Positions 11,370 through 60,955 of a stretch of DNA of 64,000 nucleotides are shown piece by piece. The position numbers and the translations under genes were made by a program. Source of the stretch: Neoechinorhynchus agilis (Eukaryota; Animalia; Acanthocephala); NCBI GenBank assembly GCA_051530055.1, contig CM121341.1:13866784-13930783 (forward strand), in the 5' to 3' direction. The first letter of the stretch is position 1. Every line of letters starts with the position of its first letter. Below the pieces are notes generated by a model that was given only the letters and a program-made list of their open reading frames with translations, searched no databases and had not been told where the DNA came from.

Positions 11370-13145
11370 TTAGAGAAAATCCTTCGATATCATAGAGTTG
11401 CAGATGTGATGATTATAATCCCACGGATATTCGCGAAGAAACCTCGTCATTAATTGTTTTAAGGTTTTATGTACATGTTTTATTCGGGAATATGATCACC
11501 GTTTGTTTGAAGATTGAACTGTTCATTTTTGTTATGGCGGAAAATTGAATTCGGCACAATATTGGGCCTTTGCGAATAAAATGCATTCAATTTTCCGCCA
11601 TAACAAAACATCATGATCACCACAATTCCAACTCGAAGATTTATTATACACAAACAACATCTTCGTTACACCTACACTCATTCGGTAATATCCATAGCAA
11701 ATGGAATTCCGCGTCCAAGGCATTCGATAAGCTCCATAAAAACTATTGGCATATCTTCGCCGAGGCTATCGATCAGCACTTGCGAAAAGGCATCACTGAA
11801 CTGATCATTATCTTTATAGGCCGCAATGACGTCTTTTGCTCGAAACCCACTCACGAATTGGTGCAATGATTTCATTTGCTCAGAACGAGTGCAGCAATCG
11901 CAAAGTCCCTTGTTTCTACGCTTCTTTGCAGCAATGGTTTCGTTGCTATTGTCCTCTTTTTTTATGAGACTGAAAAGCTTAGAAAACCAAAACAGCAATG
12001 GGGATGGGTCAAGTAGTTGAACGTGACCGTTCTCGATTGCTCGGAGCCTTGATTTTAGTTCTTTCATCAATATCGCCTTGTACATCCGAAAAGCGTTCTT
12101 GGTGCAAGAAAAGCTTGTCTCGATTTGTTCGGCTGAATTGCTAGGCAGAATTGTTTGTGGAAGCCATATACTGTCGCTTAGCACAAAGTAGGATAGATCG
12201 CTTAATGTAATCGAAGGGTTGCCTTCAACGATTTTTAGGTCAATTATCTTGTGTGATTGATTAAAACCAAATTTTCCAATTCCCTGAGCTAAGTACGATT
12301 TGACTATACTAAATCGATATAAAGAGAAGGTGTCAATCAAGTATAATGTTCTTTTCTTAATAACACAAATACTATCGATAATTGATCATAATCGATATTC
12401 TATTGCGCTTTCTTGAAAACTTTATTGGTCTGATAATGACGTTTAGGTCTCATGTTAAGATCGATTCCCGAGCGATTGAATAAAAAGACGATATAACTAA
12501 TTAGTTAGCTACGAGTTTTACCTAAAGCAAGCTATAAAGATTTTAAGCAGTCAGATTGGGATTCGGAATAGTTGGTATTGGCAAAGACACTCCATGAACT
12601 TCATAAACCATGCGCTTCTTGTCTTCACTTAACTTCAAAATGTTCATCTTCTGACTAGATCCTCGTTCAATAAACATAAGAAAATCCTTGTCGGCCTTTA
12701 AATAACTGCAACTCTTAGGTAAAGCAATGGGTTCTTGTTCAAGGATTACGCCAGATTTCGTGCTGAGACAGATAAGGAATTGTAATTTAGAGTAACCTTT
12801 TAGACCCATGGTAACAGCAGTTATAGCGTTGGATGCCGTAACTCTTTTTGCCCTTCCAGGGAATACTTGCTTCCACAATTCATGGATCATGTTCGTTTTA
12901 ACATTTATGTGTATACAGTGAACGGCAGAATAGTGCTGGTCGTCTCGCGAGTGCTCACTTAAACAGATATAGCGAGACTCGTTATCATTGACGATATCGA
13001 CTAATTGAGCAATATTACATCGATGCCGAGTGTACCCGCTGACAAATTCGAGCCAATCATCATAATTACTACATCCTGATATAATCATCAAAGATTTGTC
13101 ATTGGAAAAAATAGACGTGTCCATTCGATGGCCGCAGTCAATCAA
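11370..13145 (-). CDS. Uncharacterised multi-exon protein (beta-rich N-terminal half, helical C-terminal half)
   Basis: Two long co-directional ORFs (200 and 220 aa) that can be joined in frame; the 3' end (11678 or 11370) and the start are uncertain. Confidence 0.65.
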
Positions 13146-13277
13146 GAAATCTTCAAAATCGAAGCGTAATCAGCGAAGCCATGCAAAAGAACAGAAATCT
13201 TTTCTTGAGCGTCAAATAACACAATACTAAATACTTGCCGAGAAATCACGTAAAACTTTTTAACTAAAAATATTTTC

Positions 13278-13536
13278 TTTCCTTTCCTTAGTTTTGGCAC
13301 CCAGGGGGATTTAAATTCAATAATGACTTATTTCGAGGTATTTCACTTGTCGGATAATTCTGACATTTCCCCCCCCCAAGGTCTGTCATTTTAAATTGTT
13401 TGGATATATGAGAGAAGTTAAGTTTTTTTTCGCAGTGAGAAGACAAACCTCGAGGAAATGTCGGAATTATCCAACGAAATATCGGAAATAAATCAGTGAA
13501 CTTAATTTTGGGGTGTTAAAACTACTGAAAGGAAGT
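13278..13536. mobile_element. MITE-like element, family B (long TIRs of roughly 85 bp)
   Basis: Left arm ...cggataattctgacatttcc is the reverse complement of right arm ggaaatgtcggaattatcc...; a related copy lies at 58566-58795. Confidence 0.8.
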
Positions 13537-14301
13537 ATCTTTTTCCTCGAAGATAATAATCCAAGATTTTCGTGCCCGAAAGAGCCGATCTTAAGTAGCG
13601 ATTACATCAGATTTGCGAATGAGAGATTCCTTTTTTCCATTTCTTGGTGTTCATTTTTGTAACATCGAAATAATGATATTAAATTGACGTCCACCGATAT
13701 TCCTGCGAAATATTACTTGATTTTCCAGCCGCATTATTGAACAAATTTTTGCGAAAATTGACATTTTTGCCTTTGACTGTTGTAATGAGAGAAAGAAAAT
13801 CTTTATTTTTTAGCTTTCACGATCTTACACGGCTTAAGCTAAGGAATTTTTGTTCAAGCGCGAATAAAACACTTTAAAGATTTATGAGGAATTAAGACGA
13901 GACCAACGAAATATTGGGAATTAATAAATCAATATCTATTCTTTTTTATCACCAAAGAATACAGAGAAGCAGTTTTATATCTCCAACGAATATTATTTTG
14001 AGTTAAACCAAAGCGGAATCCATAGTCCAAAACTCCGATTCTGAATGCAAGGGGAACAACGTCATGATCATGTTTTGCAGTTCTTTCGTTCGATGTAAGG
14101 ACATGTCGCCGAGAGGACTGAAGAATTGATTGGCAGTTTTAACAATTCTTGTAGTCGCATTCGTTGTCGTAGTTTGTGATTTAGTTTTTTGATGATCGGT
14201 TGGTTCGCCAACGAAAAGTTTGTGTTTTTTAATGCTACTACTTTATGATTGATTTGATGTTGCTTTTGTACTCTCACCGCCCATTACGAATTTTTAGATA
14301 A

Positions 14302-34484: not shown

Positions 34485-35893
34485 GTAAAAGTCTTGAGTG
34501 GGTCTGAGACAAAGTGGAAATAGGCACTTTGTGTTATTAGGAAAGAGCCTACGTGACAGTGGTTTTGCCAACTAATTGCTCAAAACAAAGATAATCATGA
34601 ATTTTTAAGACATCCAGAAAATCAGAGCGTTTGAATTTTTCCACCTTACCATGGAATCACAATTTCGTCTGACGATGAATACTGATTATATATGTTTATG
34701 AAACATTAAAGTATCTAAAAAGTATCAATGATCGAGTTACACGCTAAATCGCGTTCACGTCTAACTGATTAATTTTATTTCTCAGAAATACGTATTTAAA
34801 TCCATCAATGGAAATTTTTATGTTCAGCGAAAGGAATCTAATAACGCGACATTGACGACTAATTTTACACTTGTATAATAGTGACGGCATTTTGCTTATT
34901 TTTAGTGGTCGATTATCCACGGTTAAAAGTGTACCCGGCGACTTTTTTAAATAAAAAAGGAAAAATAAGTATATAGATGCAATGTCTTAAAAACGAATCA
35001 CATTTAAAGTTCTTTTCAGAAGTAAATGGATATTTTAGGTGATTTACAGTCGCTATAAGTCGATGAATGAGAGGAAAGATCGGACAAACAATCTACGACG
35101 GCATCTTCAATCTCTTTTCAGTAGGTCGAGCGTGTCACAAATCTCACTTAATGTAGTATCGCGATTATCGTAAACCAACTTTTTAAAAGTCACGTATGTC
35201 ATTTGCAATAGCCTCAAAAGGTACACTTAGTGATCGTGTCTACGAATCCTAGTTATTTGGAAATACAATTTCTATATTTAGATACCACATTGTTAAGACT
35301 AGATAAGGTCATGACATTTAAGATCAATTTATGAGAGTCCTTTAAGTAAGGATCCGAGCGGAAACCTCAAAATCCTTCTTTTATTCATATATTTCATCAT
35401 TCCCTGGTTATGTTAATTAAACAAGACAGGTGGCACACTTGAGCCAATGTTTTCTCAACATCCATGCCACATAAATATGGTGCATGCTTGAGATGATGAA
35501 CCCATTTTATGGCACACCATCATTTCCTTCGCACTTATCATTACTTGTGCTTCGGGCGGCACGAAAACCAAAGAAAATGCAGGTGAGAACCATTGAAAAT
35601 TGAATCCCGGAGCATTCAAGTTCGACATAAGCGATCAATACGAGCAAAAAATATGCCCGGATTGAGCGAACCTTAAGTGATCAATTTTACTGAACATTTA
35701 TTAAGAACAGAAACAAAAGTAATCGAATGCGTTATTTACATTTTCTTGTTAGCTTAGGAAAGTATGTTGTGTGGATAATTTTAGAAAAAGAGAATGCTTG
35801 ACTGGCCGTCAATTTTTTTTATGTTATCTCTCATACGAAGATAAGATAAGCTGACAAGTCGACGAACTAAGAGAGGATTACTCGTCCTGCGTT

Positions 35894-38800
35894 TGATGTA
35901 AATAACCTGGCAAAATCCACGAAAATGCTCTGGAATTCGTCCACTTAGCTAATTTTTATTTGACGGAACATAAAGCACGAATAAGAGGCTCAAAAAGTTT
36001 TGTGAGCATATATAAAGGATGCATCTCATTAACTGTCTTTTTAGCTGGCAATCACACTTGACAATAGTCTCTAAGGCGAAAGTTTCAGTTGTTAACAGAC
36101 TTGGACGTGTAGTGGATGCATGAGGGGAAAACTTTATGCAGCACCAAAAAACTGACAGCTTGTATACTTTCAATTATTAGCAAATTTCGTTTAAATAAGA
36201 TGGATAAACAGACGCATAATATAGTATATTATAATGTCCTGGTAATTCGCAATAATCGAACCGCTTTCTTGGATGACCGATTTGTACGTTCCTCCGATTC
36301 CACTCATTGAGATTTTTCTTAGATTATTATTATTATTCTTGAACGATGTTAGATTTTGCATTATTTTAAGAGCGAACAAAGGCGTAAATACTGAATGGTA
36401 AGGCATATACAAGGCTTTTATTTGTAGTCTTGATTGAAAAAATTGGAAAGACCAACGTGATATTTGCTCATATTATTCGGTAAGTTTTAGTTAAATATCA
36501 TGCAAGAATGTCCCAACATCGGGTTTTACTCCAATTAGTCTATAATGCATTCTTTCAATCATTTTCAGTAGAGTGATTTGTCTTGAAAGGGGACGAGCTT
36601 TTAAAGGTACAAAATGGAAAATCAAATGCTGACTTTTTCACACTGCATTTGTTTGCTGGAACACATTACTTTGTATCATAGAGAATTGTCGTCGGGGTGA
36701 ATTTGATTCGAGTTTGGCGATGTTTTTCCCCCGGATTGTTGTTGGTGTTGATTATTTATTTTAAAATATTTCGTAAGCATCCTTAGCGATTTCCAATCGA
36801 CAGGAGAAGGAAAAACACCGTATGGACTTCGGACAAGCATCAATAATACAGGCTGAGGCTAATTTACGAAGGAGATTGGTAATGGAGGCAATATACATCA
36901 CAGGGAATGTAAGCATGGAGGGTAACAAAGCGAATCATACGCTAGTACTTCCGAAAATTCTTCACAAAATAAAACCAAAACGTTAGATCACCGCAGCTTG
37001 TACGTCGAACCCGCGCATCCACGCCTATAGTCCAGTTTTGACTTTAGCTTAATTTGTAGACATAACTGAAGAGGTAAGCAAAAAACTTACGATATATTTT
37101 AAAATAAATGATTAACATCAACAACAATCCGAGGGAAAAGCATCGCCAATGTCGAAAAATTACTTTGTGTTCGCAAAACTCTTCGTTCGCGGAAAATATA
37201 TGTTGTTGTGTAGATATCCATTTATGAAGTAATTATGATGGTGAACTGAAGGAAAAAAATTATGAATATATTAATCAGAATTTTCGACCAATGCGTTGGT
37301 CTTCTTCAGTGATTGTCAGGAGAGGAAAATACAAGTAAGCTTTGTCAAATGTCTATGGATTTTTTGAATTTATCTTTTCAGACATAAGGAATCGTGAATT
37401 TTATTCGTACTATGGAACGTGAAACTAAGCGGATTTCCATCGCTCATGGTTCATGTTTGATAGATTTTCTCATGAAAATGCTTTGCAGATTTTCTAGAGC
37501 TGAAACAGTTCTTTAAGGAAATTAGAGTGCGTCCCATTTAGCATCATTTAATAAGGTCAGTTTGTTCCATGGTCATGTTAGGAAAAACTTATCATTTTTG
37601 AATTAGTCAAACGGACAAAAATCAGTCTATTAAAAACGGAATGGGGAAATTTTGTTCTTAGTTAAAAACGAACGCTATCAAAGTCATTGTATTTGCGTTT
37701 CATCAAATTTTTACACCATGCTTGATTTGAATCCGAAGCGATCACTGAGAAATAGTTTCCGAGCCGTGTTATTCATGCTGTTGAAAACTATATTTAAAAA
37801 ATCTAATGTTTTCACTTCCAATATCGCTAATAATAAAATCAAAGTTCCCGCAATATGAATTAATGTCTCTCTAAGGATCAAGATATAGCTTTCTCCGTGA
37901 CCCTTATACCACCGTAAGGGATTTACTTATCTTGTGCGTTTTGTCAGCGTCTAGCCATTTTGCAAACACCCACATACAACACTGTATGCACTTGCATAAG
38001 ACGAGTGGGAAAACAAGACTGTAGCGTTTCACATCTCGAAAGGTGATGTAAATAACCTGGCAAAATCCACGAAAATGCTCTGGAATTCGTCCACTTAGCT
38101 AATTTTTATTTGACGGAACATAAAGCACGAATAAGAGGCTCAAAAAGTTTTGTGAGCATATATAAAGGATGCATCTCATTAACTGTCTTTTTAGCTGGCA
38201 ATCACACTTGACAATAGTCTCTAAGGCGAAAGTTTCAGTTGTTAACAGACTTGGACGTGTAGTGGATGCATGAGGGGAAAACTTTATGCAGCACCAAAAA
38301 ACTGACAGCTTGTATACTTTCAATTATTAGCAAATTTCGTTTAAATAAGATGGATAAACAGACGCATAATATAGTATATTATAATGTCCTGGTAATTCGC
38401 AATAATCGAACCGCTTTCTTGGATGACCGATTTGTACGTTCCTCCGATTCCACTCATTGAGATTTTTCTTAGATTATTATTATTATTCTTGAACGATGTT
38501 AGATTTTGCATTATTTTAAGAGCGAACAAAGGCGTAAATACTGAATGGTAAGGCATATACAAGGCTTTTATTTGTAGTCTTGATTGAAAAAATTGGAAAG
38601 ACCAACGTGATATTTGCTCATATTATTCGGTAAGTTTTAGTTAAATATCATGCAAGAATGTCCCAACATCGGGTTTTACTCCAATTAGTCTATAATGCAT
38701 TCTTTCAATCATTTTCAGTAGAGTGATTTGTCTTGAAAGGGGACGAGCTTTTAAAGGTACAAAATGGAAAATCAAATGCTGACTTTTTCACACTGCATTT

Positions 38801-40193
38801 GTTTGCTGGAACACATTACTTTGTATCATAGAGAATTGTCGTCGGGGTGAATTTGATTCGAGTTTGGCGATGTTTTTCCCCCGGATTGTTGTTGGTGTTG
38901 ATTATTTATTTTAAAATATTTCGTAAGCATCCTTAGCGATTTCCAATCGACAGGAGAAGGAAAAACACCGTATGGACTTCGGACAAGCATCAATAATACA
39001 GGCTGAGGCTAATTTACGAAGGAGATTGGTAATGGAGGCAATATACATCACAGGGAATGTAAGCATGGAGGGTAACAAAGCGAATCATACGCTAGTACTT
39101 CCGAAAATTCTTCACAAAATAAAACCAAAACGTTAGATCACCGCAGCTTGTACGTCGAACCCGCGCATCCACGCCTATAGTCCAGTTTTGACTTTAGCTT
39201 AATTTGTAGACATAACTGAAGAGGTAAGCAAAAAACTTACGATATATTTTAAAATAAATGATTAACATCAACAACAATCCGAGGGAAAAGCATCGCCAAT
39301 GTCGAAAAATTACTTTGTGTTCGCAAAACTCTTCGTTCGCGGAAAATATATGTTGTTGTGTAGATATCCATTTATGAAGTAATTATGATGGTGAACTGAA
39401 GGAAAAAAATTATGAATATATTAATCAGAATTTTCGACCAATGCGTTGGTCTTCTTCAGTGATTGTCAGGAGAGGAAAATACAAGTAAGCTTTGTCAAAT
39501 GTCTATGGATTTTTTGAATTTATCTTTTCAGACATAAGGAATCGTGAATTTTATTCGTACTATGGAACGTGAAACTAAGCGGATTTCCATCGCTCATGGT
39601 TCATGTTTGATAGATTTTCTCATGAAAATGCTTTGCAGATTTTCTAGAGCTGAAACAGTTCTTTAAGGAAATTAGAGTGCGTCCCATTTAGCATCATTTA
39701 ATAAGGTCAGTTTGTTCCATGGTCATGTTAGGAAAAACTTATCATTTTTGAATTAGTCAAACGGACAAAAATCAGTCTATTAAAAACGGAATGGGGAAAT
39801 TTTGTTCTTAGTTAAAAACGAACGCTATCAAAGTCATTGTATTTGCGTTTCATCAAATTTTTACACCATGCTTGATTTGAATCCGAAGCGATCACTGAGA
39901 AATAGTTTCCGAGCCGTGTTATTCATGCTGTTGAAAACTATATTTAAAAAATCTAATGTTTTCACTTCCAATATCGCTAATAATAAAATCAAAGTTCCCG
40001 CAATATGAATTAATGTCTCTCTAAGGATCAAGATATAGCTTTCTCCGTGACCCTTATACCACCGTAAGGGATTTACTTATCTTGTGCGTTTTGTCAGCGT
40101 CTAGCCATTTTGCAAACACCCACATACAACACTGTATGCACTTGCATAAGACGAGTGGGAAAACAAGACTGTAGCGTTTCACATCTCGAAAGG
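35894..40193. repeat. Head-to-tail tandem duplication, 2 x 2150 bp (35894-38043 and 38044-40193)
   Basis: Identical text and ORF translations at an offset of exactly 2150; no differences seen by eye. Confidence 0.97.
36790..36930 (+). mobile_element. Penelope-like GIY-YIG endonuclease C-terminal remnant (second copy at 38940-39080)
   Basis: HRMDFGQASIIQAEANLRRRLVMEAIYI pattern. Confidence 0.6.
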
Positions 40194-40207
40194 AAAAAAT
40201 ACTACAA

Positions 40208-42179: not shown

Positions 42180-42212
42180 GTGTTCATTAATTACATGACG
42201 TATAATTTTAAT

Positions 42213-42452
42213 AAGTATCTATGTGCGGCCTTTTGCACAGTTGATAATTTTCATTGGGCACGCGTTCCCACCGATCTGGTTCAGGGAAGGGCATAAAATC
42301 ACTTAATACCTTGAAACATACGGTTATGAGTTTGTACATTCCTCCGGAACCAGATCAGTGGGGCTGCGTGCCCAAGGAAAATTATCAGCCGTGCAAAAGA
42401 CAGCACATAGATGCTGAATAAAAAAAGTTACCGGCTGGCCAGTCTTCAAAAA
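42213..42452. mobile_element. Hairpin element family A (about 70-bp inverted arms plus 3' tail)
   Basis: Arm tatctatgtgcggccttttgcacagttgataatttt... pairs with ...aaaattatcagccgtgcaaaagacagcacatagat; flanked by tataa(t/c)tttaat direct repeats. Confidence 0.8.
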
Positions 42453-43920
42453 TATAACTTTAATCTTCGCATAATGGCTTGGCAGGAAAAAGAACCGGTT
42501 TTGATCACCGAGAATCTTGGATTAAGACTTTCAATGGCCAGTTGTTTTGAACTTAAAAAGATGCAAAATAATTGCGTTCCGCATAATCCAGAAAAAGAAA
42601 ATTAATTAGTTCAAATCATTAGGCTAATAAATTTTCAACCGACATCGATTCGCAATGTAGGTGATTATTTAATTGGTGGTGAACGTAATTCAAGTTTGTA
42701 CAAAGGATTCCTCACCCGTCGTTAGCGAACTAACCGTGTTTATCGGCAGATTGCTATCATCTAATTAAATGAAATCGAATCCGCAAAGGAGAGTTAGTCG
42801 ATGATAATGCCCGGCGACTTCTGAATTTTAATTAGCGTAGTTTTTGATCATTCTTCAATAATAGAATATTGATTATCTATTCTTCAATAAGGTCTACCTG
42901 CGCAATGCCGGATAAACTGGGTTGTTAAGAGTAAACGGTAATTAATTTCTGAGTCATGGTATCAAAAGTAATAAGTTGAAAATAAGATTATTGCTCAGCA
43001 AATTAAATTTGTGAACAGGATACGAAATCTAATTCTCATGATTCCATAAGTGAAGCCATTGAAACTAATTCAATGGTTTTCTTTGGCGTCGAGTAAGATT
43101 TTCTGTAACATGGTTTTAAATCTTCATTTAGATTTTAAGCACTGATATTGATTGTAGGCGATGTGTATTCGATAATGAACTAAAGAACAAAGCATTAACG
43201 TCAAAGCAAGAACCATGAAGTGTAGTTGTGTTACGTTTCGTTCATATTGACGAAGATTTAAGCACCTCGTTTATAATGTTATGAAGTTAAAGTATTCTTG
43301 AATAGTTTTTATTCGCACAACAATATGTTTTGGTGATTTATTTATCAATGCAAAATAGAAAGATTATCCAAAATGCCGCATGAATTTCTGATTATTACAG
43401 AAAGACGACAATTTCGCATTGTTGTGGTAAAAGATAATAATCGATAAGATAGATGTCCTTAAGTAAAAATGTATAAAGTTGATTATGCCATGGACATTCG
43501 TTGTAAAATCACGTTTCTGAGGAGAACGTTTTGATTAGTCATCGAATAATGGTCAACATGACCGACCAGACTACGAATATCGGTAAACCAATTTGCGCCG
43601 GGAGTGGATGACGGGTCCGTTCGGGTTTGAAAGTTTGTGGTTCTTGTTTGAAGGGGAGTTTGCTAGGTCGACACCTAAAGAAGAATATAAATCATCAGAC
43701 TATTCGTCATTATCTCGATTTTTTACCCTCTTCATGTATTCATCCCATATTCAACTTTGCTCCCTACGACCGAAAACTTGACTTCTGGGCGGAAACGAGC
43801 TCCCGTGCCCACGGCAAATCATGGATGTGATCACCTTATGTCTCCTTTCGCTAAATCACATTGAAATTGGCAAAGGATATGTTTCTATGTCTTGGTCGCA
43901 ATTTGAGCGGTTCAGATTCT

Positions 43921-44152
43921 TACATCCCCTGCTCGACTTTTTGGCATGAAGCCACACCGAATTCTTACATCAGAGAAGTGATCGAACCATTTAGCCTCTT
44001 ATGCATACGGTAATGAGTTTCTACATCTCTCCGGATTCTCAGATACCTCCAGGAGGCGGGATTTATCAGTGAGTTTCCACCCTTCCGTTGTATTACTCTC
44101 TAATGTAAAAGATCGGTGTGGCTTCATGCCAAAAAACCGAGGAAGGGATGTA
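43921..44152. mobile_element. MITE family C, TA-flanked, TIRs of about 50 bp (Tc1/mariner-like)
   Basis: TAcatcccctgctcgactttttggcatgaagccacaccga vs reverse complement of tcggtgtggcttcatgccaaaaaaccgaggaagggatgTA. Confidence 0.85.
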
Positions 44153-44159
44153 ATAATCT

Positions 44160-45330
44160 CAATCAATAGTGCCGGCTTGCCAGTAACGTTTGAGAAATAA
44201 ATGCGGTTGTTGATTTTGAAGAAGATTGCGGGTTCGGTCGGGTGGGAATATTCGGTCATGGAATGTGGTGGGAAATGGTCTTTTAGCTTGTAGGAGAGTT
44301 TGCGAGGTTGGGTATTTCCTCAGGTTCATTAAGGAGCTTAGATATAGGGGGTGCGAGTTGTAGGAGGATGAAATGAATTTGGATCACGAGTGTTGCGCTC
44401 CTGCGAAAAAGGGGAATAAAATGTGGTGAAAATTGTGGTGGCAGTGTTGAGAGAGTTTTGATATGCATTTTGTTAGCGGGGGGAAATCAACTGTGCAAAT
44501 TTAAGACTCTTCTATGAAAGGTTTCAAGACGACGATTTATGTTGCAAATACGGGGTAACCGTAGTTGGGGGATGGTAAGATACAGCAGAAGTTAAATTTG
44601 TAGAGATCGGGCGAAGGGATTCCTAAATGTCGGATGCGTTTGAGGAGATAAATTTTAGAGGTGTTGAGGTTGAGGGAGAGAGTGATGTGCGAGTCTCATT
44701 TCAAATTTGATTGAAATTGGAGACGTGAATTCTTAGGGAGGTGACTCGTAGGATGTCATTTTTTTTTTATTCTCGAAATTACTTTTCTTTACATTCACCA
44801 CCTCCCACCAAATTCCAGCTTTTGTCCTTCCTCGACCGTCGCCATCACGCTGGCAACATTGCCCCGTTGTACTGCCAGCGAGATATTTTGTCGAAGAAAT
44901 AAGCCTGCTCTTGAGTCTCCGGTTGCCTGATGGATGTAGGGTTGCGCGAGAATGAGGGGATCGCTTCGAAGCTTTTTGAGAAGTTCAGATAGAATTTGTG
45001 ATTGGTGCAGAAATCTTTGACGTGGATGATTTCTTTAAATGTTAAGGAGAGGGAGAGGTTGGATGATGATTGAGTGATGAGGGTGAGATCGTCGGCATAT
45101 AAGAAAAGTTTAGGGTCGGAGAGGTTTGAGGTCGTTTAGGAAAATATTAAAAAGAAGTGGTGACAACACAACACCTTGAGGTACTGCTCTGATGAGGGAT
45201 ACTTTAATCGGGGAGATAGCCCGGCAGTGAATGTATTGTTGGCAATCGTGAAGATAAGAGACCAGGCAGTGGATCTGCCTGCCACGCGTTTGGACCGAAA
45301 TCGGAGCAGGCCTGGAGTAGTAGTAAGTTG
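44160..45330 (-). mobile_element. Decayed CR1/L2-like LINE reverse transcriptase and C-terminus
   Basis: AVPQGVVLSPLLFNIFLNDL, KLFLYADDLTLI, IYLLKRIRHLGIPSPDL, RLETFHRRVL with frameshifts. Confidence 0.9.
44757..44975 (-). mobile_element. 5'-truncated CRE-clade element with poly(A) tail, nested in the LINE
   Basis: ATGDSRAGLFLRQNISLAVQRGNVASVMATV followed by aataaaaaaaaaa; the host LINE reading resumes on both sides. Confidence 0.85.
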
Positions 45331-46048: not shown

Positions 46049-47933
46049 TCAAGGGCTAATCAATTTATTCTCAATACACTCACGTTCATGCAAGTTCCAA
46101 AGAGCAGTAACAAGCTCACACAGTCCGATTTTGCTAGTATTTTTTGACATGATCCTTAAGAGAAAGATCCCATCGGTTTTCAATGCATCATCAATGAACC
46201 TGCTGATGCTACCACGTTTGATGTCCGAACCGTAGTCGGAGATAATAAGATGTGAGTGAATGAATCGTCTTCTACTCCATGGGAAACATATACACCACAG
46301 CCATATGAGAATAGATACGATGGTTAGGACAAGAACAACACTGTACCAGAACCATATAATGATGAAAATCTTTTCGTTGAACATATTCACGGGTAAAACA
46401 CACTGAACTGTATGTTTATGATTATTGTCAGCTAAATTGCGAACAATAAAGTCACATAGCGTGACCCGGGGAAATCTTTTATGGATGTTCCATTCTTCTC
46501 CATCAATAATGTTTTTTAAGAGATCGTAACCAAGTGTGGCGTAGCTCTCACCAATGACAAATTTTAAGCTGTAAATTAGCCCGGAACAAATAACAACATA
46601 TTGCCAAAACACGGGATTACAGTCTGGCTCCAAGCAACGGAAAAAGGTACAATTATTATATAGAAAGCATACTCAAGAGAAGCGATATTAACAGTTTTAA
46701 CTACAAATAAGCAGCATATCAGGTAGTCCAGAGTGCGTCCTAAAAATGGAACCACTTAAATTCCCGATTGCGTCGTATGTTACATTAATCGCCAGGGACT
46801 ACATTTTTTCATAGATTTTCACCTATATCCCTAGAAGTTGGAAAAATCCCACTAAGTTTATTTTGAGACTAAATCCCGTGCGTTGGTTTAAGCGAATTTC
46901 ATGGATAAATAGGCAGTTACTAGTGAAACCGACGTACTTGTGCTCGGCATTATTCGGGCGAAAAGTAGGTTTAACCTCTGTGTCGGGTCTAAAGCCAGGA
47001 AACGTACCCTTTGATTATTCTGATGATGAGCATAGAGTGCATTGTCGATATAGATGGCAGCGTGATCGATTGCTTCAGTCTTGACATCGAAATCAAGCTC
47101 GTCAAAATTGTCGACGGAGCGAGCAATTAAACTTAAATCAAATCCCTTTCTTTGGAGAAAATTGTGCCATGCTACACTTGGCAAGTAAAATAAGAGTGCC
47201 ATACATGGCAAGATGAATGGTACCCATTGATAGTATGGAACAATGTTTCGACTTTGATGACTTAGAGCATATGTGTATGAAATGATTTCGGAACCGGAAA
47301 CAGTGAAGTCGGTATTTAGGAAAAGAACCACATTAGAATATACAGTTCTCCATTAATTATGGAAAAGAATTACTGTGCTCTTGGATAAAATATTCACGAC
47401 TAAACAGTTTTTTGGAATGAAAGCAGTAGGTAATTTTATAGAACTCGTCTCTTAGCCGGTTGTCATTAAACATTTATGATATTTTAGATCTATTATAAAA
47501 ATGCAAAAAGCAGGATTGTAAATGTTTAGCGCATGCCTGATCGCCATTAATCAGCACTAATAAGGGCGGGTAAAAATGCCAAATTTTTTCAATAAAGCGA
47601 ATCCCGGTATTTCAGACACATATACGATAAATGATCCGTGTACCTGGATGCATCTAAGGAAAGTTCATTACCATTATGTCCACAATGTACAAGATTGTAT
47701 GAATTGGAAACCCAGCAGATATAATTCGCATATTCAACATGAGCTCCCGTGAACTGAGCTGGTGTCCAGCATGCGATTGGATCGCCTACATACTGCTTCG
47801 TACTGATTATCACAGTGAACAGCACAAGCAGTAGGACTGTGTACCGTCGACAGATTTTATCGAATTGGTCATCATCACAATTACACTTAAGCTTTTTGAT
47901 TTTTGTAATTGCATCAAGGAAACCAGCGACCAT
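46049..47933 (-). CDS. Innexin (gap-junction protein), interrupted by TIR-bounded inserts
   Basis: DDDQFDKICRRYT, KQYVGDPIACWTPAQFTGAHVEYANYICW, YYQWVPF, RFPRVTLCDF, TVQCVLPVNMFNEKIFIIIWFW. Confidence 0.96.
46599..46890. other. TA-flanked, inverted-repeat-bounded insert in innexin TM3 (290 nt removed)
   Basis: TATTGCCAAAACACGGGATTACAGTCT vs reverse complement of the other end TAAACCAACGCACGGGATTTAGTCT (20/27); excision turns GCT TAA into GCT TAT GTT (LVTAYLSMKFAYVVICSGL). Confidence 0.85.
47270..47624. other. TA-flanked inverted-repeat element at the first innexin ORF break (353 nt)
   Basis: Ends share TATGTGT(C/A)TGAAAT; excision gives TCG TAT GCT in frame, but a canonical CAG|gtacac...taag intron also works. 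Confidence 0.6.
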
Positions 47934-55730: not shown

Positions 55731-56780
55731 TCAATGTCGAACTTCAGTCGTAAGATTTCCCTCGAGTAAACTTACTAGACGTTGGCATTGACGATTGATT
55801 GTTTCGCTTTTCTTTTCCGAATCTGTATCATCTATGAAATGCCTTAGCTGTTCTACATGCCGACTGTGTTCTATAGTCACCACTGGAACATTTATGTATT
55901 GACAAAATAAGTCAAACTCGGACGAAGGTTGGAACACATCTATATGTGTGCCACACTGAGGACATTTGCAGGAAGAGCAATTAACAACACATCCTACTAC
56001 TGGTAGATTTAGTCTTTTGCAAAATTGGAATTGTCGTTTGACGTCGTCCGTTGAAATGCGATGAGCATGAGTGAAGAGCGGGATTTCCGAAAAAACAAGT
56101 TTAGGATAAAGGAATCGACTACTTTTACGTCAGGATGTTTCATATAAAGAATTCTGCTGGTCGTCTTTTGGAAACCCTCGTTCATTTACGAGTATAACAG
56201 CCGTTGGTTTTACAAGACCTGCCAGTGTAATGTGTTCATCACTTGTTCCTGGTGGCGTATCAACGACCATATAGTCCAATTCTCCCCAATCTACATCAGC
56301 GACGAGTTGTTGAAGAAATCCATTTTTACGTGGACCGCGCCATATCAATGCATCCGACGGTTCAATGAAATACTGTGAAGACACAACAGCCAAATTTTCT
56401 TTCACCATGACCGGAGACCAACCTTTGGATGTCTGGTAGACGTCGTTATCAGTCGCATTTAAGAGCTGAGGTATGTTAGGTCCACAAAGATCACCATCGA
56501 TTATCCCAACAGAATGCGATTCATCAGTAGATAGGCCGAGGGCTAAGAGGGTAGCTATAGTGCTTTTGCCAACACCTCCTTTACCGGACATAACCATGAT
56601 TCGATTTTGCCAAGCCGATATCGTATCTTTTATTCTCCTTAACTTCGCCGGATCGTTGTTAGATTGAGCTGATGCGCATTGTTGGCGCGATGGACATCCT
56701 TCACAAGCAGCAGCTTGACCTGGTAATCCAGCACTAGGATCTGAACTTGGACATGCGTTGGGAACATCATCTGTTGACAT
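55731..56780 (-). CDS. NUBP1: Cytosolic Fe-S cluster assembly factor NUBP1/Nbp35
   Basis: N-terminal four-Cys cluster (C..CEGCPSRQQC), MSGKGGVGKST, DGDLCGPNIP, IWRGPRKNG, VDTPPGTSDEH, CKCPQC. Confidence 0.93.
56066..56185. other. In-frame, stop-containing, inverted-repeat-bounded insert in NUBP1 (117 nt, ATG direct repeat)
   Basis: TGAACGAGGGTTTCCAAAAGAC vs reverse complement TGAAGAGCGGGATTTCCGAAAAAAC; removal gives AVILVNAHRISTDDVKRQ, colinear with the recalled AVIITTPQEVSLQDVRKE. Confidence 0.72.
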
Positions 56781-56900
56781 TTGAATAATTTGAGACAAAA
56801 ATGCAAAATCTGAAGACAATCTGAAGGAATTCCGGAGCATATTCGCCATTATGATAACTAAAGGAAACATAATTTAATGCGTTCAAATTAAAACTTCCGT

Positions 56901-59546
56901 CTATTCAAATTGTGTTACAGGTCTCCGTAACTTTGATTTATAGTCAATAAAGAGGGTCTCCATACACACAACCGCCACACATTGTTCTGCTTTCGACTTT
57001 GATGTATGCCAATTGATCGTAGTGTAATTCGAATCCAAAAAGCGTAGCTTAGATTTGAATACTCTTTCAGCCTCTGACTTTTGAATTGTCGAATATTCTG
57101 GTTTTTGCAATCCATGGGCATTAGCATACTCACTAAGAACCGTTTTCGGGTTGCATGTTTTCAAATGCAAACTTCTTTTCATCGATCAACAATAATCGTT
57201 AGTTCAGATGAGCAAGGTATCAAACCTATCGTACACAACGAATAGTTGCACAACTTCAGGTTCTTCAGACATAACTGAGTCTTTATCCCTACTAAAGATT
57301 AAGGCAGACATCCTCGTGTCTATAGGCACATAGTCCGGTGTATTGACATCGTATTTGCGACTAAAGCGTTGTTATACGATTAAGAATTTTTACGTAAATT
57401 ATTTTCGAAATGGCAATAGAGCCTAATGTGTATATTTTCAGGCTTAGAATATCGTTTTTCAATCCAGCTGAACAATGGTTATTCGCTAAGGTTTTTAAAC
57501 CCAAAAGTGGTATAAAAATCCAACAAATAAACAGTCAGAACCGCATAAACCCTTTTTGTTGTTGGGCACAAACTTCCGAAGTAACCATACTACTTAATCT
57601 AGAAAGAAAAAATCTTACCAAATATCCAGAATCGAAATGCCCATTCCAATACCAGCAGCCAGCGTATGTTCATTTTCGAAAGCTTTAAAATGTTTTAAAT
57701 TATAAGCGACATCGCTTGCTCTCAGATTTAAGTTTATAGCGTGGCGTAGAAATCGTTCAATAAGCTTATTTCCGTCGTCAGAAGATCCAAAGACGGCAGG
57801 GTTTTTTCGTGCCGATCTACCGATCATAACACTCAGTCCTTTGTTCTTTTCCATATATTCAACTAATTGTTGATGCCTTTGAACGGTATTTGAAACTCCA
57901 TTGATGGTTAAATTAAAATTTGGAAAGATATTATATAGTTTTTCAAATATTTGTTCATTGCATGGCGTTCTGTAACTTTGTTCAGGTGTGCGACCGTGCA
58001 CCGTAAGTCTACTTACTCCAGCGTTGATCAAACTCCATACAAATTCAATCGTTCGTTCATCCTTTTATAAAAACGATAGAGATTATGAAACAAAACAGGT
58101 AAAAAGACGCACTTTTTCAAATATTCGTATTTTGCACGAAACAGGAATCTTGAGGTTATTTACTTCAATGATGTGATGCTGAAAACGTAGGTCGAATTAT
58201 GAGTTTTTGTGAAATATAGGAGACAAATTCATTGTCAAACCTTACGGTCGCATCACATACGTTCTCTCTGTACAGCAGTTAAGATGGACCAAAGGGACGA
58301 AAGAGAAAAGAAGATCATCAATAGAAAACCTCGGGTATAAACAAATTAGAATTATGATGAGCATACTCTCGGGCATGACATATTTTATTGATTTGAAATA
58401 TACGAACGAGGTAACCTTGCCCTATCAGTCATTTTTTGTACGCTTTTACGGCGAAAAGGCGAGGTTATCTCGTTTATTATTTCAAATAAATAAAATATGT
58501 CATGCCAGGGAGTATGCTCATCGCAATTCTAAGAAAAAGAATTTTTCGCCTAATAAAAGGAGAAATTTTCTCTTGGTAGATTTGCATCCCACGGATTTAA
58601 ATTCACTGAATTATTTCCGATATTTCACGTCGGATAATTATGACATCTCTTCAAGGTTTGCCATAGCCTACATATTAGAAAATTTGTGAAACAATGACAA
58701 ACCTCGAGGAAATGTCAGAATTATCCGATGTAAAATATCGGAAGTAAATCAGTGAATTTAAATCCCATGTGTGGCAAAATTACCAAAAGAAAGTATCTTT
58801 AAGACAAATAGGAGAAATGACAACATCACATCATTCATCGACCAAGTTTTCAACAATCTAAATTCTGAAGTTTACGAAAAAGATTTAAGTATTTATAAGA
58901 GTAAACCTTCACTGCAAGGTCAGGTGTCTTCATTAATGCAGATCCCATACCAGCCTAGAAGATAATTAGAGCTGATTCGTTACGAAGGCGCAGAATTTCA
59001 CCAACATGAGTTGAGAACGGCTTAGGGCATCCCATATTAACATCGATACCAGCAACGTCGTTTTCACTAAAAAAATAAATTACAGAAGGAGACAAAGAGC
59101 AAGTGAACCTACACAATTTTGGCTGCTTTCAGCGCATGATCAGGATCATTGGTTCCCTTTTTAACGACAATCAAAATTCCTTTAAATCATGAGAACTAAC
59201 CAATTGTAAAATAACTCGATCTCGCTCATGCTCACAAGTCTGAAATAATATCTTTCCAGTCTTTGCAATCACAAAATTAACAGTTTTTGTTTCCTCTATA
59301 AAAAACGTATAGATCTCAAATGCATAGGTTTTCTCAATATTAACCATCAAATATCCTCGTACAGCACAGCAACGACTTATCGATTATTTCCTGGTCGAGC
59401 AAGGACGTAAGACAAACATTTATATTTCCACTAACATATGTATAAGCCAGATCAGCCCCATAATCCAAGACGGTCAAACGAAACGGAAGCGTTGAAGCGC
59501 GGACCATTGGTGCTGCAATTTTGGCTTCTCTCTTGTGTACATACAT
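56901..59546 (-). CDS. DUS2: tRNA-dihydrouridine(20) synthase with C-terminal dsRBD
   Basis: AAPMVRASTLPFRL..LDYGAD, GIDVNMGCPK, GMGSALM, IPVSCKIRI, LTVHGRT, VMIGRSARKNP, dsRBD PKTVLSEY...SKSKAEQCVA. Confidence 0.94.
58162..58842. other. GT-flanked, inverted-repeat-bounded insert in DUS2 (679 nt removed)
   Basis: Both ends carry T(G/C)AATGATGTGATG(T/C)TG; excision gives IVENLVNNLKIPVSCKIR, colinear with the recalled ILSTLVKGTRRPVTCKIR. Confidence 0.78.
58566..58795. mobile_element. MITE family B copy nested inside the DUS2 insert
   Basis: Long inverted arms; right arm gacaaacctcgaggaaatgtc.gaattatcc is shared with 13441-13500. Confidence 0.8.
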
Positions 59547-60169
59547 TCGATTTTTAATAAATAGGCGATCTTCAAATACAATTTCGCTTTAGACCGAAAA
59601 AGCGTTCATCGATACCATCCAATTTTGATGGACGATATTTTGTTCATCGATCGTACATGACAAACGGATAGCAACTGCGAACCTGACCACCACTTTACTA
59701 CGAAGACGTTCTCGAAAGAAACCAACAGAAAGCAGCTATGTGTGCCGAATGCGAAAGAAGTTATTAATCCGAAAAAAGTATTAGAAGAAAACCTGAGTTT
59801 TTTCGTTTTATGGCAAAGAAATTGAAATGATTTTATTTTAAATCCGATATTTCAGCACAATATTGTAAAGTTGTTAGTAAAATCATTTCAATTTCTTCGC
59901 CATAAAACAACCAATATCAACATTTCAATCTAAAAAAGTTATTTTTTGATTCTATTCAAAAAGAGGCGATTGCAAAAACTGACCAATAGAAAGTTGTGTG
60001 GTCGGAATCGCAGCGGCCCATTAAAAATTGATGGCTTATCTAACTTACTTTCTATTGGTTGGTATAGCACCTCAGATTTCAGTTGACTAATTTATTATTT
60101 AAAATATCTACACAGTCGTGTGCTTTTACCAAGGTAGAGGACGGATATTAACACTGTTCTTATATTAAG

Positions 60170-60470: not shown

Positions 60471-60801
60471 AGTGCGGTCCATAATTATGAAGTGTTGAGA
60501 CAATCCGTGAGAAATGGAACACAGAACCATTTGATATGCGTGCATCAAAGTTCTGTCCCTTTGTTAGTGGCACTAATTTCCTTAAATGCCGTTTACGTAT
60601 CATGAACTCTTCTTCCTTGCAAATCATACAGATGAAGTCAGGTAAGGCACAAGATTGTGCCGAAATTTTGGATTCAATAAAAAATTAATTTTTACGCCAT
60701 AAACAAGCATGAATAGTTCAATTTTCAAACAGATTATAAGTTTGTACATACGTGAGGAGAGGCTTCCTTGCGAAATATTTCCATTCAATTAAATATGTTT
60801 T

Positions 60802-60955
60802 TAAGTGTGGCTTTTTTCACGGCTGATAATTTTGTTTGGGCACACAGCCCTGGTCTGTCCTGAGTCGTGTGCCCAGGGAAAATTATCAGCCGTGAAAAAC
60901 GACCACACTTAAAACACACAGAAGAGAAGTTACCGGCTGGTCCGACTTTAAAAAA
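60802..60955. mobile_element. Hairpin element family A copy with a 17-bp flanking direct repeat
   Basis: Inverted arms of about 50 bp, tail ttaccggctgg, A-run; tcaattaaatatgtttt at 60785-60801 and 60956-60972. Confidence 0.85.

Follow-up and report, generated by a model that had tools for sequence, protein, structure and literature searches.

An innexin gene of the acanthocephalan Neoechinorhynchus agilis is interrupted inside a tyrosine codon in the part that encodes its third transmembrane segment (TM3). The gene lies on the minus strand of a 64,000-nucleotide stretch of contig CM121341.1 (assembly GCA_051530055.1, positions 13,866,784 to 13,930,783), hereafter the window, to which all coordinates refer unless another locus is named. 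The interruption is probably the insertion, within the N. agilis lineage and into a formerly intronless gene, of a transposon with terminal inverted repeats (TIRs) that duplicated a TA dinucleotide. A second TA-flanked element with inverted repeats lies upstream in the same gene, where it appears to have become an intron.

The initial annotation had placed the split inside the Tyr codon and held that TAA becomes TAT only when TA is joined to TA, which both the sequence and an alignment of 119 homologues bear out. The minus-strand open reading frame (ORF) 46888..47331 has the last residues ...SVSLVTAYLSMKFA (its tail is also given as ...STSVSLVTAYLSMKFA) and then TAA at 46890–46888, and the minus-strand ORF 46049..46633 holds TAT GTT GTT ATT..., that is YVVICSGLIYSLKFVIG, from 46600 on. 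The two ends described earlier, LVTAYLSMKFA-TAA upstream and TAT-VVICSGLIYSLKFVIG downstream, were thus both found on the minus strand. The 5′ TA (46890–46889) provides bases 1 and 2 of the split Tyr codon and, together with the first A of the insert, forms the TAA stop, and the 3′ TA (46600–46599) provides the first two bases of TAT (Tyr221). From TA to TA the span is 46599–46890, of which 290 bp can be removed. The TA join gives GCT-TAT-GTT and, with exon 1 (47933–47644), a single open frame of 403 codons. Exon 1 (47644..47933, MVAGFLD...LSLDAS, the last 2 bases being a partial codon) was set by its ORF and ATG and matches the reconstruction of the public protein (P0001). Exon 2 (46891..47260) runs from YYQWV to LVTAYLSMKFA, up to the GCT (Ala) codon before the split Tyr, and exon 3 (46049..46598) begins with the T of TAT and continues through VVICSGLIYSLKFVIG... 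to the stop.

The TA-joined protein scores 289.3 bits against the Pfam Innexin family (PF00876; cut-off 25) and covers profile positions 1–331 of 333, and its best solved relative is INX-6 of C. elegans (5h1q, E = 1.7e-40). The innexin signature YYQWV in TM2 is present, and the TM3 signature Y-x3-K-x2-Y (Y214/K218/Y221) is found only in the TA-joined reading. In the MAFFT alignment of the 119 homologues, position 214 is Tyr in 112 and position 218 is Lys in 118, while at residue 221, encoded by the split codon, 106 have Tyr and 10 have Phe, so the expectation that the TA join would rebuild the conserved TM3 pattern is borne out. The Innexin score is highest for the TA join (289.3 bits), followed by two splicing bypasses described below, A (275.7) and B (274.5), and by the NCBI gene model (264.1). 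As judged from alignment and profile, the TA-joined reading is the real ancestral sequence of this innexin.

The anatomy of the insert looks like that of a small non-autonomous DNA transposon, a miniature inverted-repeat transposable element (MITE) of Tc1/mariner style, the superfamily being suggested by the duplicated dinucleotide. A target-site duplication of 2 bp, TA, is characteristic of the Tc1/mariner superfamily. The interior (46601..46888, minus strand) is 288 nt long, making a 290-bp unit when one TA is counted, and contains stops in all six frames. The 5′ TIR arm (46866..46886, minus strand) reads CCAACGCACGGGATTTAGTCT and the 3′ arm (46604..46625) reads CCAAAACACGGGATTACAGTCT on the plus strand. 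Pairing of CCAACGCACGGGATT-TAGTCT with CCAAAACACGGGATTACAGTCT gives 18 of 22 matches with one gap, with p = 0.0004 in shuffles and 0.001 among equally spaced samples of the window, the ends having been preset by the protein alignment. In the predicted minimum-energy fold the arms form the closing helix, with modest stability (z = −2.2). The TA flanks are kept as a 2-bp duplication, and GCT-TA-T is host sequence once the insert is removed. A six-frame protein search returned no relative of the insert at E ≤ 10, and the intron-1 element likewise had no match; as a proxy for copy number the protein database is uninformative, as a hairpin family with three copies in the examined DNA was also without a match. 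Scans of the insert, the locus and the whole window found no Rfam family or tRNA.

Comparison with Pomphorhynchus laevis points to the direction of the change. The closest orthologue, GJ496_011786 of P. laevis, reads RYLSIKLVYIMNN at the junction where N. agilis reads AYLSMKFAYVVIC, and the BLASTP alignment of the two proteins runs unbroken across the junction with 49% identity overall. Residues 3–420 of the P. laevis protein are encoded by one continuous stretch (locus L003, 5936–7189, tblastn identity 100%), with TAC as the Tyr codon at the homologous position. The check for an empty site in a related species, proposed in the initial annotation, thus gave a single uninterrupted stretch, and since that stretch is uninterrupted, both N. 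agilis interruptions are lineage-specific. The direction of change would accordingly appear to be gain rather than loss. P0007, the nearest paralogue within N. agilis (on CM121342.1), is interrupted by a GT-AG intron of 47 nt; this lies 11 codons before the homologous Tyr and thus not at the position of the TM3 insert. The only other N. agilis innexin among the top database matches is 38% identical and lies on a different chromosome. No copy of the insert was found by blastn (word size 7) in the P. laevis loci. The P. laevis innexins GJ496_011785 and GJ496_011786 adjoin on contig WNNJ02002079.1 (L001/L003), and their closest N. agilis relatives lie on separate chromosomes, CM121342.1 and CM121341.1. 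A gene model of 107 amino acids with no Pfam match sits on the same strand inside the 1.5-kb first intron of P0007 (locus L004, 11408–11731) and may be a false prediction across repeats.

These observations suggest the following course. A short non-autonomous Tc1/mariner-style MITE would have entered the gene where it encodes TM3, at the TA of a TAT (Tyr) codon; both TAs would then be the target-site duplication, and the TAA stop would consist of the duplicated TA and the first base of the element. That an exact TA-to-TA cut reopens the frame follows from its being the reverse of the insertion, and a dedicated excision mechanism is not needed to explain it. The earlier step from "only TA-to-TA removal restores the frame" to "TA-to-TA excision takes place" is therefore not supported: a duplicated TA and TIRs are what is expected after an insertion of Tc1/mariner type, and any fresh insertion, if removed exactly, gives back the host frame.

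A second element, flanked by TA and bearing TIRs, would have inserted about 370 bp upstream, between a pre-existing AG|GT and a pre-existing TAAG|T. Intron 1 (47261..47643, minus strand; GT at 47643, AG at 47261; 383 nt) is absent from the P. laevis orthologue and contains this element (47263..47629, minus strand), with TA flanks at 47629–47628 and 47264–47263. The arms, ATATGTGTCTGAAAT at 47623–47609 and ATATGTGTATGAAAT at 47269–47283 (plus-strand reading), each begin 4 nt inside the TA and share the inverted repeat ATATGTGT[C/A]TGAAAT with 14 of 15 matches; in the element's predicted minimum-energy fold, too, the ends are paired. The repeat has p ~0.0013 when the intron is set by GT and AG alone, and ~0.05 when the 46 frame-preserving TA pairs are allowed for. 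The AG stands immediately after the 3′ TA and the GT 14 nt upstream of the element, and once the element is taken out, 18 nt separate the donor AG|GTACAC from the acceptor TTTAAG|T. GT-AG splicing of intron 1 gives a loop of 26 residues, equal to that of P. laevis, and TA-to-TA removal of the element (365 bp) keeps the frame open and adds RYTDHL. The 365-bp insertion would thus have separated two latent sites and turned them into a workable GT-AG intron, at the price of six loop residues. On this evidence intron 1 is a candidate for intron gain by transposon insertion.

At the TM3 insert, the ancestral sequence can be restored by three equivalent cuts. By direct reading, TA or AA stands at their 5′ end and AA, AT or TA at their 3′ end; since none of them has GT-AG, GC-AG or AT-AC borders, no canonical U2 or U12 intron reproduces the TA join. 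From codon V211 to the stop there is no GT, so that every GT-AG route loses at least VTAYLSMKFA. Usable GTs lie 31–86 nt upstream of the insert, and usable AGs 24–28 nt inside its 3′ end or 31 nt downstream. Bypass A uses the donor CAA|GTACGT (46932..46940, intron from 46937) and the acceptor GAGCCAG|AC (exon from 46623) on the minus strand; this in-frame 314-nt GT-AG intron yields ...MPST-NCNPVFWQ-YVVICSG..., with about 23 hydrophobic residues left for TM3. Bypass B, also on the minus strand, uses CTA|GTAACT (46915..46923, intron from 46920) and TTGGAG|CC (exon from 46627), an in-frame 293-nt GT-AG intron that yields ...SVSL-PDCNPVFWQ-YVV.... Splice reconstruction shows that the donors gtacgt and gtaact do delete YLSMK, as had been stated. 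The case made earlier against ordinary splicing thus holds in part: no canonical splice restores the ancestral sequence, yet in-frame GT-AG bypasses exist. A GC-AG rescue from TTC|GCTTAA to TTGGAG|CC preserves both the frame and YLSMKF; it was judged unlikely for its poor donor and for PDCNPVFWQ in the middle of TM3. Unspliced read-through meets the TAA stop after TM2 and the cytoplasmic loop. The mRNA bearing the TM3 insert would be handled only by GT-AG splicing around the element, with loss of YLSMKFA.

The fate of this copy can be weighed from its coding blocks. Eight of the 68 near-invariant innexin columns are departed from, and 5 of these departures are common to P. laevis. The three that are specific to N. 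agilis are N224I and Q228L, both in TM3 and at most 7 residues past the junction (window ~46590–46576), and Y359A; residue 224 is Asn in 116 and residue 228 Gln in 118 of the 119 homologues, and P. laevis keeps both. N224I and Q228L may reflect relaxed or altered constraint on TM3, the clustering being a post-hoc observation on three sites. General decay is not apparent, and to judge from the sequence a recent insertion or a working, altered TM3 fits better than an old pseudogene. Two insertions within 1.2 kb of coding sequence, in a gene-shedding genome, fit a copy on its way out. The N. agilis genome has 46.2 Mb, 13,655 BRAKER2 genes and about 40% of the metazoan core genes missing (PMC12690905). 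A null allele or a young pseudogene in a gene-losing parasite genome is, at somewhat less than even odds, the leading possibility for this innexin copy; a slightly fainter prospect is rescue by cryptic GT-AG splicing, which would give a protein whose TM3 is altered, and precise removal of the TM3 insert is improbable. The protein collection searched held no transcript-derived protein of this gene. Innexins are not mentioned in the N. agilis papers and have no entry in the examined supplement of PMC12690905.

Several points weigh against a transposon insertion as the source of the interruption. The TIR arms of the insert begin 2–3 nt inside the TAs, and the outermost bases, AA against TTG, do not match. 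The TA duplication amounts to two bases, which is weak by itself, and is without backing from other elements, the hairpin family included. A blastn search (word size 7) of the 64-kb window and 23 kb of another chromosome (L004), together about 87 kb or ~0.2% of the N. agilis genome, gave no second copy, and the multi-copy property of MITEs is thus lacking in these 87 kb. Finally, the three coding blocks are all open, with 60 of 68 near-invariant innexin columns kept: intact blocks argue against an old pseudogene, and precise removal predicts them as well. The closest likeness of the insert is nevertheless the Stowaway-like Tc1/mariner MITE, which it resembles in its size of 290 bp, its lack of coding capacity, its TIRs, its TA flanks and its hairpin-pairing termini, and from which it differs in the arms set back from the TA, in having no second copy within the 87 kb searched and in having no known autonomous partner or transposase. 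Its termini also appear unlike the end of Tc1.

Alternatively, both innexin inserts may be cut out exactly at their TAs, either from the DNA, in the manner of the internal eliminated sequences (IESs) of ciliates, or from the RNA, with help from the inverted repeats. Exact removal would agree with the intact frames and with the survival of YLSMKFA, and the worm would then make the full ancestral TM3; we consider it quite improbable that both inserts are so removed. At the RNA level, the TM3 insert would be a non-conventional intron, removed precisely from the pre-mRNA at TA|TA as the inverted repeats pair. The TIRs do pair in the predicted fold and bring the TAs within a few nucleotides of the helix end, and the direct repeat at both junctions and the lineage-specific position are among the features listed for such introns (PMC11282704). 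However, the fold is of modest stability, the N. agilis introns examined have GT-AG borders, a good GT-AG solution is available to the sister element in intron 1, and a single instance does not make a class, so that removal of this kind is very unlikely.

Excision at the DNA level, by which a germline insert would be cut precisely at the TAs in somatic or expressing nuclei and TAT restored, is less likely still. In its favor, TA-to-TA removal alone restores the conserved Tyr and keeps YLSMKFA, the second TA-flanked TIR element in the gene also leaves the frame open on such removal, and the coding blocks are intact; all this is equally expected from two fresh TA-duplicating insertions. Moreover, IES-like excision would be expected to leave many interruptions across genes, and in 64 kb only the two innexin elements were found; the other window genes examined have GT-AG introns and no TA-bounded exon interruptions. 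The ends of Paramecium IESs follow the consensus TAYAGYNR, and the insert ends, TAAACCAA and TATTGCCA, are unlike it. The 4-bp footprint typical of classical Tc1 somatic excision would frameshift this gene (PMC12632400). Against both forms of exact removal, the literature searched held no report of non-canonical introns or of programmed DNA elimination in Acanthocephala.

The public gene model suggests another reading, namely that the region is an old spliceosomal intron in which YLSMKFA is chance intronic sequence. The NCBI/BRAKER model ACOME3_003291 (P0001, 364 amino acids; CM121341.1 at 13.90–13.92 Mb), the best match in the database search, is reproduced exactly from the window with two GT-AG introns, one of which (46569..46975, minus strand; GTTAAA...TTTACAG, 407 nt) runs from the donor GAG|GTTAAA, with GT at 46975, to an AG at 46569, the exon resuming at 46568. 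This intron, itself a GT-AG way around the insert, is in frame and has a good acceptor, TTTACAG, but it deletes 39 residues with the whole conserved TM3 motif, including the near-invariant Y214, K218 and Y221, and its product scores 25 bits lower as an innexin. The orthologue is intronless here and the intron of P0007, at 47 nt and 11 codons upstream, is not its counterpart. As an account of origin the old intron is already contradicted, and we give it hardly any credence. On the insertion account the model would be wrong in TM3, and ACOME3_003291 needs to be flagged as disrupted or re-modelled. Equally scant credence is due to an assembly artefact, in which the hybrid MaSuRCA assembly introduced or misplaced the 290 bp: the assembly merges hybrid ONT/Illumina data from a pool of about 50 whole worms and from single females into one consensus (PMC12690905), and a near-perfect 2150-bp tandem duplication elsewhere in the window could be such an artefact, but TIRs of its own, a clean duplication of 2 bp and a frame restored exactly are not what an artefact would be expected to show.

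A TA-duplicating insertion, with the upstream element as an apparent intron, can be set beside systems already described. Introners (Gozashti et al. 2022, PMC9860276; PMC11282704) likewise combine TIRs with a target-site duplication, occupy lineage-specific coding positions and occur in compact genomes of aquatic hosts, and the upstream innexin element behaves as a GT-AG intron as transposon-derived introns do. Introners, however, form near-identical multi-copy families that carry or create their own splice sites, whereas the splice sites used here were already in the host sequence, and neither GT nor AG borders the TM3 insert. Tc1 in C. elegans genes offers another likeness, a TA-targeting element inside an exon. 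Rushforth and Anderson reportedly found in 1996 that the function of genes with Tc1 in an exon is partly rescued by cryptic splicing in or near the element. Somatic excision of C. elegans Tc1 differs from the exact removal considered above in being imprecise: it is rare (about 1e-3 to 3e-4 per cell), and in about 75% of cases it leaves behind the 4-bp footprint (PMC12632400), which would shift the frame here.

Ciliate IESs, both the TA-IESs of Paramecium and the MITE-like IESs of Blepharisma (bioRxiv 10.1101/2022.05.02.489906), likewise have TA borders of which one TA is retained, and share with the insert a transposon ancestry and a position inside a codon. They differ in occurring at thousands of sites rather than in one gene, and N. 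agilis is an animal without known editing of the genome between germline and soma; the end consensus of Paramecium IESs is not matched by the insert. Fritillaria borealis has non-canonical introns derived from MITEs, and euglenids have non-conventional introns (PMC11282704); both are similar to the insert in TIR pairing and junction repeats and, if removal is exact, in their non-GT-AG borders. Unlike the present single case, they are genome-wide classes whose removal at the RNA level has been demonstrated, and the neighboring N. agilis genes all use the GT-AG spliceosome.

Ordinary splicing is indeed seen in the other genes of the window. Two GT-AG introns, each about 45 nt long, interrupt Rpt2; in ClpP a short GT-AG intron is accompanied by a GT...AG intron of 735 nt, at whose splice sites the conserved INSPG|GQV stands; the Dus gene has a GT-AG intron of about 650 nt that contains hairpin repeats; and two gaps in an importin gene have in-frame GT-AG solutions. 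TIRs are absent from the four other long introns (ClpP, Dus and two in importin, p > 0.6). When the whole window was scanned for TIR-bearing TA pairs that on removal join ORFs of 60 codons or more, about 19 matches came up, among which the two innexin elements are the only real ORF interruptions; the remaining matches lie within continuous ORFs or are at threshold level and were judged spurious. There is no sign within the 64-kb window of TA-bounded exon interruption as a general property of the genome. The NCBI annotation at 56130–57933 and beyond (L002, 1–1804) gives a single product of 452 amino acids with Dus and ParA/NUBP-type ATPase domains; the region resembles two adjoining minus-strand genes, one NUBP-like (56130–56870) and one with Dus exons (57618–59590), and the model may be a false fusion.

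Repeats of foldback type appear common in the compact N. agilis genome, at about 1 per 6 kb here. A multi-copy hairpin family, foldback or MITE-like, has copies at 58545–58815, 13262–13550 and L004 ~13196–13260, with arms of about 70 nt; the copies are 78–89% alike, and the one at 58.6 kb lies inside the Dus intron. Its ends show a weak resemblance to those of the TM3 insert (p 0.013–0.024). The family (58577–58781 and 13289–13524), with a TA on either side of its copies, had been considered as support for TA duplication, which was withdrawn when the similarity between copies was seen to continue about 15 nt past the TA. Further palindromic or hairpin elements, with arms of 24–80 nt that are 78–100% complementary, lie at 42206–42423, 43911–44162, 58346–58532, 59787–59926, 60796–60916 and 11527–11608. 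The tandem duplication mentioned above is head-to-tail (35892–38041 and 38042–40196; 2150 bp, 4 mismatches), and each copy holds a 450-bp element with inverted arms of 71 nt (36707–37156 and 38857–39306); the duplication either happened very recently or is an artefact of assembly.

If precise removal were true after all, this would be the first IES-like system, or the first resembling those of euglenids and Fritillaria, in Syndermata. Under the transposon insertions favored here, two TIR elements stand in the N. agilis gene, whose P. laevis counterpart has no intron, and one of the two is apparently a GT-AG intron. The latter would be a small natural example, in a 46-Mb animal genome, of intron gain by a transposon landing between pre-existing proto-splice sites, and the disrupted TM3 may be a snapshot of ongoing gene loss in a lineage known for massive gene loss.

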